From Octopus sinensis (Eukaryota), in assembly GCF_006345805.1 (NCBI RefSeq), contig NC_043014.1, positions 50,158,001 through 50,222,000 of the forward strand: a stretch of DNA of 64,000 nt, written 5' to 3'. Shown in pieces: positions 56,891 to 59,800 of the stretch. A model generated the notes under the pieces. That model saw nothing but the letters and a program-made list of their open reading frames with translations, made no database searches and was not told the origin of the DNA. The number at the start of each line of letters is the position of its first letter. The stretch's first letter is position 1. Both the position numbers and the translations under genes were made by a program.

Positions 56891-59800
56891 CACACACACA
56901 CACTCATGGAGTGGTTGGCGTTAGGAAGGGCATCCAGCTGTAGAAACAATGCCAGATCAGACTGGAGCCTGGTGCAGCCTCCTGGCTTCCCAGACCCCGG
57001 TCAAACCGTCCAACCCATGCTAGCACGGAAAACGGACTTTAAACGATGATGATGATGATATATATATATATATATATATATAGTACATAAATGCACACAT
57101 TACTTTCGTTTCAGTCATGCTGTACCACCTTTAAATGGTATGGTTGGTAGATTATAATGACCCTCACCCACAGTACTCATAGAAGGATACTTATTTCAGC
57201 AATATTGCAAGGATAAACTTAAGGTAAATTCAAGCTGGGCAGAATTTGAACTTAAAACAAATGTAGTTGAACACCGCAAAGCATTTGGTCAGACAATGCT
57301 CTGATAATCTCTAAGTTATCCCCCACCCCCATCTCCCATTTAAAAAAAAAGAAAGAAAAAAAGACATCCATATACAAACAAAATGCAAGCAGAGTATAAA
57401 AATGATAACGATGGCCTGAAGATAGCTAACACTTAAAACTAGAGAATTGAAACAAAAGTAAATACGACATTAACACCTGATAATGAAGCTGGGTGGGGAT
57501 GATTGAGAGATATTGTAGAGAGTAAAAAGATGGAAGGCTTAGGTTTTATGGAAACTGGATGGAAACTAGATGTGAAAATTTTTAATTTACTTGGCTCTTT
57601 AGTCTACTATGACAACACAAGAAGTTTTGAAATAATGAAAGATCAAGTAAGGACAGAATATGAATGATTATTAAAAGTAAAGTGAAAACTGAAATAGTTC
57701 TGTTCAGTCAGACTTTCAGAGACATCAACTACTTTATCTTCGTTTATGATTATAAGCAATGTGAAAGAAGCTACCAGTGACAGAGCTCAATAAATTGATT
57801 TTCATGAATAACAAAGATGAACCAACTGACTGCTTGCTGGTTTGTCACTGAAACATTGTATTCTGTCGATGTGAATCCCCTGAGGATAATATAAAATGCA
57901 GAGACTGGCAGACCATTTCTAAGTAAGTTTTATTGCTTTTATGCAAAACAGTCAAAATCTTTCATAGATATCAACACTTAGGCATGGTTGAATATATATG
58001 ATTATCTATCAATAATTTGATTATTCGTTCGATTAAAATAAAATAGAATGAAATTTAACAAGATACAATGAAGACAAATTTGATTTAGTTAATACAGATA
58101 TATTACACTACAGCTTATTTAAACCAGAGAATAGAATCACCTTCAGTAAAAAGAAAAGCAAAATATAGAGATTACACAGGCAATTTTAATTCAAGCAATA
58201 TCTTGATGTCATGCAATATATATATACATTCATACAATATATATGAAATAATTTTAAAAATTTATATATAAATATTGTATAGTACTGGACTGGTATTATT
58301 TACCTCGGGCTGAAAAGAAGATATGAAAGAAATAATTTGTTAAATGTATGAAAAAAAAAAAGACTGCAACATGAAAAATTTAATGACATTCAATTTGTAA
58401 CAGAAATGAATTTTAAATAATTTTAAATAATTTCAACAGAAAAGTCAAAACTAAATTCAATCATCCTATGCCAAGTGCTATATTTAATAGTAATTCCATG
58501 ATTATTTTGAAGACTATGATATTGTTGTGAATTTACAGAGAAGTATAAAATACATCTTTTGAAATGCTTTTTTTAAAGATAGTGAAGTCTACATGTGTAT
58601 GTAACATGTAAGGGACAGACTTAGGTGAGAATGTCTTTGAAAGCTACATTCTTTGTTAGACATTTGCCACCGCCTCTAACATAAGAGTTATCTATTTCCA
58701 TCTTTACATCAAGAAGTAAACCATTGTAACTATGAAACAAAATCTAAGGCATAATCTGCCTATAATATTCTACTATTGGCCTTGTGCCAAAATTCGAAAT
58801 CAATATTCTGCTATTGTAGAGCTACACTGGTAAAGTCTTAAATCATAATACACTGCATTATAGCTGGATTTAAGCCTACAGCCTCAGCAGATGAGTAACA
58901 CAGTTCTAAAAATATGTAGTAGTTTTCTGGATAACAAACATATTTATGACAGATTATGTTTGATTTCATTCTATACTTGAAGTGTTACATGCAATGTTCA
59001 TACCATCATAATAATAGATAACTAGCTGAGATACCTGACATTGACAGAGCTAACGAGCTTAGTAATTAACACTAGACAAAGTAATTTATTTAAAATTATA
59101 GTCAAGATTTTTGATGAAGTAACCCTCAACTAATTTTTTTTTCATTATTTATAGAAAATTTCCTTCAAATTTATTTTAAATCTTCAAAAAAAAAAATCAA
59201 AAATCAATTGCTTTCTATCTATTTAACATATTAAAGCAGGTGACATACTCTAAAAATTGAGAGGGAAAAAACCAAAAAAAAACCAACAGAAGGTGATGAC
59301 TAAGTCCAAAATTCTGCTACATCTGACACTGCAATACTGTTCGACAACCTTGTATGAATGAAAAGGGGCACCTAAATTTCTGGGAAGAATAATTGAGAAT
59401 CTTTACTTTAGCATCACCAAACTTGGGTTTGTTCAGTTTCTTCAGGCTCTATGACACTATCTACAGAGAGTTTGTTTTCAATGAAAGTATTTGTTCCACC
59501 TGTCATTGCATGCAGAATTGCTCTATTGTTAGGAGTAGAAAAGTGGAGACAAATTTGTGGGACAGAGGCTGGAAATATGAATGAAACATACTAATGAATA
59601 GGGTGACCATTTTCTGGATGTCAAAAATGCAATCCTAAATGAGAGCAATACTCCATGGGTTTCACCTGAGCTTAGTAGAGTGTCAACAACTGTTAGGGGG
59701 AGGGCACAGAAATGTTTTGTAGTCCTGAGGAGAAGGACCAGTCTTTGGGATGAGGTACTAGCAATATTAAAAATGTGCTTCTGTCAAGAGATCATCATGG

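Follow-up and report, generated by a model that had tools for sequence, protein, structure and literature searches.

Can an exon of only six nucleotides be recognised in octopus DNA, and if so, what would it do to the protein that carries it? The question is raised by an intron of Octopus sinensis that splits the first immunoglobulin-like domain (Ig1) of a cell adhesion gene. Within this intron, the hexanucleotide CCCGAG is flanked by canonical splice signals and could add two residues, Pro-Ser, to the domain. The window analysed is a stretch of 64,000 nucleotides of contig NC_043014.1; positions are given within it, and the gene is read from its minus strand.

The host gene and its probable 6-nt exon

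Thirteen minus-strand exons, from 61055 to about 32689, splice to a 687-amino acid product with five I-set and two fn3 stretches (Pfam), as in the NCAM (neural cell adhesion molecule) family ectodomain, and the AlphaFold model of the host protein contains seven beta domains. Over the whole N-terminal region, the closest solved relatives are NCAM1 and NCAM2, again in keeping with the family, to which Fasciclin 2 and apCAM also belong: the structure of NCAM2 Ig1-3 (2wim) matches end to end with an E-value of 1.2e-39 and that of NCAM1 Ig1-3 (1qz1) with 2.3e-25. When the full model was compared with Foldseek, target-normalised TM-scores of 0.72, 0.68 and 0.66 were obtained for NCAM2 IgIV-FN3II (2jll), 1qz1 and 2wim, respectively.

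With the largest single exon (41720-41370) as query, a representative search retrieved a near-identical protein of 850 amino acids, CAI9737963.1 (P0016), an Octopus vulgaris entry annotated as "neural cell adhesion molecule 2 isoform X5". Used as a query, this protein led to three more groups, comprising 13 RefSeq isoforms of O. sinensis, 12 of O. bimaculoides and one model of Argonauta hians. The O. sinensis gene carries the RefSeq name "neural cell adhesion molecule 2"; its range is 172 kb, and the gene ranges of the four species lie between 116 and 176 kb. Alternative splicing in the NCAM family yields transmembrane and GPI-anchored isoforms (PMC10084454). Both types are predicted at the protein level in O. 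sinensis, where isoforms X1-X7 have a transmembrane helix and a cytoplasmic tail, and X8-X13 have a short, hydrophobic end resembling a GPI signal. An optional cassette of 33 amino acids is present in the cytoplasmic part of the X1-X7 group and skipped in X5. The O. vulgaris model P0016 joins the GPI-type exon to the transmembrane exon and looks chimeric.

The 6-nt exon and its surroundings consist of the following features (slashes mark exon borders):

58304..58309, minus strand: microexon CCCGAG, a 6-nt cassette coding for Pro73-Ser74 of O. sinensis isoform X1 (from the sequence and from X1 versus X2)
58310..58365, minus strand: 3' splice-site region, with a run of 11 T and a pyrimidine tract ending in cag
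58298..58303, minus strand: 5' splice site GAG/GTAAAT, donor score 3.7 bits
58210..58215, minus strand: TGCATG, a hexamer of Rbfox type, located 89 nt downstream
60905..61055, minus strand: upstream exon, first half of Ig1 (strands A-C'), ending AAAATT/gtaagt in phase 2
51132..51268, minus strand: downstream exon, second half of Ig1 (strands D-G), beginning CATCAGC
60904..51269, minus strand: host intron of 9,636 nt, phase 2, splitting Ig1
58310..60904, minus strand: upstream sub-intron upon inclusion, 2,595 nt (from the coordinates)
51269..58303, minus strand: downstream sub-intron, 7,035 nt, holding plus-strand reverse-transcriptase-like ORF fragments and microsatellites

Read from 5' to 3' on the minus strand, the context of the microexon is ...gttgcagtctttttttttttcatacatttaacaaattatttctttcatatcttcttttcag/CCCGAG/gtaaataatacc..., or, in short form, ttctttcatatcttcttttcag/CCCGAG/gtaaataa. 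The upstream exon ends at 60905 with ...GAATCAAAATT/gtaagt (also given as ...GTTGAATCAAAATT/gtaagt), while the border of the downstream exon at 51268 is ttttctag/CATCAGC, or ttgatttttctag/CATCAGCATTCG in its longer form. Inclusion corresponds to the string GAATCAAAATTCCCGAGCATCAGC and skipping to GAATCAAAATTCATCAGC; for junction searches, the inclusion string is AAAATTCCCGAGCATCAGC, opposed to AAAATTCATCAGC for skipping. All the letters named by the original prediction (the hexamer, a strong acceptor, the GTAAAT donor and a CpG inside the exon) were found on the minus strand. The same is true of its distances, the supposed 9.6-kb phase-2 intron measuring 9,636 nt in phase 2 and the TGCATG, expected some 90 nt downstream, lying at 89 nt. 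Only 10 CpG dinucleotides, that of the exon among them, occur in the 2 kb around the microexon, whose base composition predicts 42.

The acceptor is preceded by a 54-nt zone free of AG, in which a TTAAC motif resembling a branch point places its A near −31, and pyrimidines make up 87% of positions −25 to −3. These values are inside the range of the 13 other, larger exons of the gene. With its canonical AG/GT borders (cag/CCCGAG/gtaaat), a length well within the 27 nt allowed for microexons and a reading frame that is kept, the element has the properties of a cassette microexon. Its recognition would depend on ordinary, strong signals, namely the TTAAC near −31, the long pyrimidine tract, the CAG and the GAG/GTAAAT donor. 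With the microexon, the split codon TT/C is read as TTC CCG AGC, such that a single Phe becomes Phe-Pro-Ser. The two extra residues would extend the C'-D loop immediately ahead of strand D (ISIRND).

Chance expectation and annotated isoforms

Splice sites were scored with generic matrices of our own, relative to the base composition of the window. The acceptor of the microexon scores 6.1 bits, and both this value and that of its donor exceed those of most real sites of the gene, which range from −2.3 to 9.1 bits for acceptors and from 0.3 to 5.9 bits for donors. On the minus strand of the whole 64 kb, scores as high as those of the microexon are reached by only 15 acceptors and 67 donors, placing its acceptor among the strongest in the window. 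At these scores, 0.016 pairs are predicted per fixed spacing per 64 kb and, by arithmetic from the counts, about 0.02 pairs for the nine frame-preserving spacings of 3-27 nt in the host intron. No other such pair was found when both strands (128 kb in all) were scanned. The thresholds behind these figures were fixed post hoc, with the candidate already seen. Furthermore, at 22307-22297 (minus strand) a strong acceptor, tttttttttccaatttccag, has strong donors downstream of it, at 7 and 11 nt; this decoy scores equal to or better than the microexon, does not preserve the frame and is absent from all isoforms. It is a useful calibrator of calls made from sequence alone and, together with the post-hoc thresholds, it means that evidence of this kind should be taken as suggestive and not as decisive for the microexon.

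The decisive information comes from the annotated isoforms. The 687 residues of the window are 100% identical to O. sinensis isoform X2 (XP_036366934.1), and identical to X1 (XP_036366933.1) except for an extra Pro-Ser that X1 has at the predicted junction; they differ from the O. vulgaris protein at 9 positions and from that of O. bimaculoides at 109. Pro73 and Ser74 are the sole difference between X1 (897 residues) and X2 (895 residues). The sequence ...ESKF-PS-ISIRND... is found in 12 of the 13 O. sinensis isoforms, as is ESKFPSISIRND, with X2 alone being without Pro-Ser, and the accessions that contain it belong to two series, XP_029647... and XP_036366.... Among the gene models, inclusion and skipping products are thus both present (X1 and X2), as is characteristic of a cassette exon. 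These XP_ records are computational models.

The origin of the annotated Pro-Ser can be traced within the intron. CCCGAG is the only instance of AG/(C or T)CCN(AG or TC)/G(T or C) in its 9,636 nt, in other words the sole splice-flanked 6-mer yielding Phe-Pro-Ser. An extension of one of the flanking exons was considered and rejected: read-through before the downstream exon gives Phe-Ser-Ser and has no upstream AG, while the upstream exon is followed by gtaagt. The Phe-Ser-Ser read-through explains a near match obtained with tblastn. With a single suitable 6-mer and no possible exon extension, the Pro-Ser of the RefSeq models must therefore come from CCCGAG. An origin of the microexon from a repeat was rejected as well; a self-BLAST found repetition only in the adjoining (TA)n/(TATACA)n stretch and not in the exon or its splice sites.

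It could be argued that the AG-N6-GT pair arose by chance and that the annotated Pro-Ser is a modelling artefact, driven for example by protein alignment, of an exon that is never spliced in. Such an artefact would be compatible with the predicted nature of the XP_ records, with the equal-strength decoy at 22307 and with the O. vulgaris annotation, which is without the insert. However, only about 0.02 such pairs are expected in the intron, both forms have been modelled, Pro-Ser occurs in two accession series, and the skipping of short exons by minimap2 would explain its absence from O. vulgaris. Automated pipelines, moreover, would not normally place a 6-nt exon 2.6 kb away from its neighbour unless spliced reads or transcripts supported it; the RefSeq models containing Pro-Ser therefore very likely rest on transcript evidence. 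We regard the artefact as very improbable.

We are thus highly confident that CCCGAG is a genuine 6-nt cassette exon of the O. sinensis NCAM-family gene annotated as NCAM 2. The frame-preserving cassette that the original prediction proposed, adding Pro-Ser to Ig1, is present as the exact insert in the O. sinensis isoforms. Its accompanying claim that gene predictors would miss the exon did not hold, given that the NCBI pipeline has it in all but one of its 13 isoforms. The microexon is consequently not new, as RefSeq already has it for O. sinensis in XP_036366933.1 and eleven other isoforms. We found no paper naming both "Octopus sinensis" and "neural cell adhesion molecule", and a scan of metagenome DNA for either spliced junction, with a gap of 0-6 nt, gave 0 matches. 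That an exon of 6 nt can be called correctly from the raw sequence is of methodological interest; the biology is modest and amounts to another very small in-frame exon of a neural Ig adhesion molecule.

From the proportion of gene models, inclusion appears to be the default, with the skipping in X2 being minor. The reading we lean towards is that of a real, near-constitutive exon, in which Pro-Ser represents a lineage-specific change of length in a rapidly evolving loop of Ig1, regulated switching would be slight or absent, and X2 is a minor product or splicing noise. The 12 inclusion models against one skipping model favour it, although counts of gene models are not quantitative for inclusion in any tissue. 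A further point against it is that the O. vulgaris annotation, largely from long reads of brain and developmental material, contains only the skipped form, and skipping could be common somewhere.

The Ig1 loop and its divergence among octopuses

In an alignment with Ig1 of NCAM2, Pro-Ser is a two-residue insertion between ...IISTQ and RVVVQ. The segment from W to AGxY has the length found in NCAM1 when the insert is present and that of NCAM2 when it is not; the family therefore tolerates both lengths. AlphaFold models were available for the inclusion form (P0151) and for the skipped form (P0016), each based on the same nine sequences in a different order, and all Ig1 strands are kept in both. 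In the inclusion model, a short helical turn (residues 69-71) leads to Phe72-Pro73-Ser74, which are in a non-regular conformation and are followed by strand D at residues 75-80, with a local pLDDT of 76-80. The skipped model has strand D at residues 73-78 and a local pLDDT of 86-89. The lower values of the inclusion model may reflect an alignment dominated by the shorter loop. As modelled, Pro-Ser lengthens the C'-D loop of Ig1 where the two half-domain exons meet.

The original prediction had proposed conservation across coleoids as a check, and annotated proteins show the exon in O. sinensis only. The RefSeq isoforms of O. bimaculoides, all 12 of them, read ESKL-IKIRKEPPFSS, without the insert; the Argonauta hians model has a different, longer and unrelated loop, also without Pro-Ser; and both models of O. 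vulgaris, the sister species, correspond to the skipped form. Homologues from abalone and amphioxus have constitutive loops of the longer length. Between O. sinensis and O. bimaculoides, seven changes fall at positions 50-58 of the window protein, against an overall divergence of 16%. At its start, where it codes for strand D and the D-E loop, the downstream exon (51268-51132, minus strand) has diverged much more than the remainder of the protein, and IKIRKEPPFSS of O. bimaculoides is one residue longer than its O. sinensis counterpart. The near-constitutive exon that we prefer agrees with the loop being a hot spot of divergence between these two species and with its variable length among NCAM1, NCAM2, abalone, amphioxus and Argonauta.

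For the O. vulgaris annotation, minimap2-aligned long reads, largely from brain and developmental stages, were used together with STAR, PASA and EVM, and isoform names were copied from nr matches. Long-read aligners such as minimap2 are prone to skipping very short exons. With a pipeline of aligned long reads and copied names, it is plausible that a 6-nt exon was missed, and the O. vulgaris reference annotation is probably without it. The point matters because this species is used for neurobiology.

A further proposal is that the microexon is young, born in the lineage of O. vulgaris and O. sinensis, and that its regulated inclusion tunes homophilic or heterophilic adhesion. If true, it would be a datable birth of a microexon creating a new adhesion isoform in the cephalopod nervous system, but we judge this proposal to be quite improbable. 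The strong difference of the loop among octopus species offers a small, testable case of recent evolution of NCAM isoforms.

Regulation and comparison with known mini-exons

The original prediction saw the exon as a two-residue binding switch. In this reading, the microexon would be specific to neurons, would be promoted by Rbfox and/or SRRM proteins and would alter the binding of NCAM Ig1. As in Rbfox-enhanced exons, which have a (U)GCAUG a few hundred nt downstream at most, such a hexamer is indeed located at +89, and both isoforms are annotated. Alternative splicing peaks in octopus neural tissue (PMC9699675), and small inserts that alter Ig adhesion receptors have precedents in VASE and in meA/meB of PTP-delta. 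However, the hexamer does not discriminate, since two of the 13 larger exons of the gene, at 41720 and 32889, likewise have a TGCATG no more than 300 nt downstream. It is situated at 58215-58210, on the edge of a low-complexity (TA)n/(TATACA)n stretch, and the host intron contains four copies, giving a chance of about 4% of finding one in any given 100 nt. No UGC was found near the 3' splice site, the nearest TGC being at −59. The exon is not seen in O. bimaculoides, which has 12 isoforms and a tissue-rich annotation, and no evidence connects the Ig1 C'-D loop with a binding interface. A neuronal switch is, in our opinion, unlikely.

SRRM/eMIC-dependent microexons are reported to have a weak 3' splice site with a UGC close by (10.1101/2021.02.24.432780). 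The octopus exon shares with the SRRM3/4 (eMIC) programme a length of no more than 27 nt, the preservation of frame, its occurrence in a neuronal surface protein and a fairly long AG-free zone with a pyrimidine tract. It departs from the signature in its strong acceptor and in the distance of its nearest TGC, and we do not file it as a member. In the fly eMIC microexon paper, Fas2 appears only as an antibody stain. The strong, ordinary splice signals favour the near-constitutive exon. Most likely, CCCGAG is a tiny exon of ordinary type with strong definition, and its effect is to make a variable loop longer; its action as a regulated adhesive switch is possible but unsupported.

The VASE exon of NCAM, of 30 nt, is situated between the two exons coding for Ig4 (PMC2116347), and its presence changes the response in neurite outgrowth (PMC2120034). 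Like the octopus exon, VASE of NCAM1 is an alternative mini-exon in an intron between two exons of a single Ig domain and lengthens a loop. Unlike it, VASE codes for ten residues in vertebrate Ig4, is developmentally regulated and was described in 1990, whereas the octopus exon adds two residues to Ig1; no homology is implied.

In the LAR family (PTPRD, PTPRS and PTPRF), the meA and meB exons have an established role in the selection of ligands. PTP-delta variants that differ in these exons have been crystallised with different ligands (PDB entries 4yfg, "meA3/meB minus variant", 4yfd and 4yh7). Like the octopus exon, these are in-frame inserts of very small size, located within the N-terminal Ig domains of a neuronal adhesion receptor or between them, but they belong to another gene family and occupy other positions.

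Tiny cassette exons of neural Ig adhesion molecules also include the mini-exons of the NCAM1 stalk (MSD1 a, b and c, and the 3-nt AAG) and exon 2 of L1CAM. These are outside the Ig cores, in the stalk or the N-terminal tail, whereas the Pro-Ser exon is inside Ig1. The octopus gene likewise has stalk cassettes: between the second Fn domain and the membrane anchor, the window contains five, used in combination among X1-X13 and reminiscent of the vertebrate stalk mini-exons:

32115-32089, minus strand: 27 nt, coding for HSPDSIEES
29331-29302, minus strand: 30 nt, 10 residues, in X11 only
26937-26875, minus strand: 63 nt, coding for DPSPAG...TTK
about 20820-20780, minus strand: about 39 nt, 13 residues, boundaries approximate
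about 13468-13358, minus strand: 111 nt, Ser/Thr-rich and mucin-like, in X8 only, boundaries approximate

At the start of the first Ig4 exon, two in-frame acceptors, at 41966 and 41954 (minus strand), are separated by 12 nt. RefSeq uses the one at 41966 (VPPTVEIPQ...); the acceptor at 41954 would drop VPPT and is used by no isoform. On the plus strand, LINE-type, reverse-transcriptase-like ORF fragments are located at 52521-54041 and 61886-63500, inside and upstream of the Ig1 intron, respectively. A long (TATACA/TA)n microsatellite extends over 56500-56950, and many copies of a short element, coding for 17 amino acids in one of its frames, are scattered over the window.
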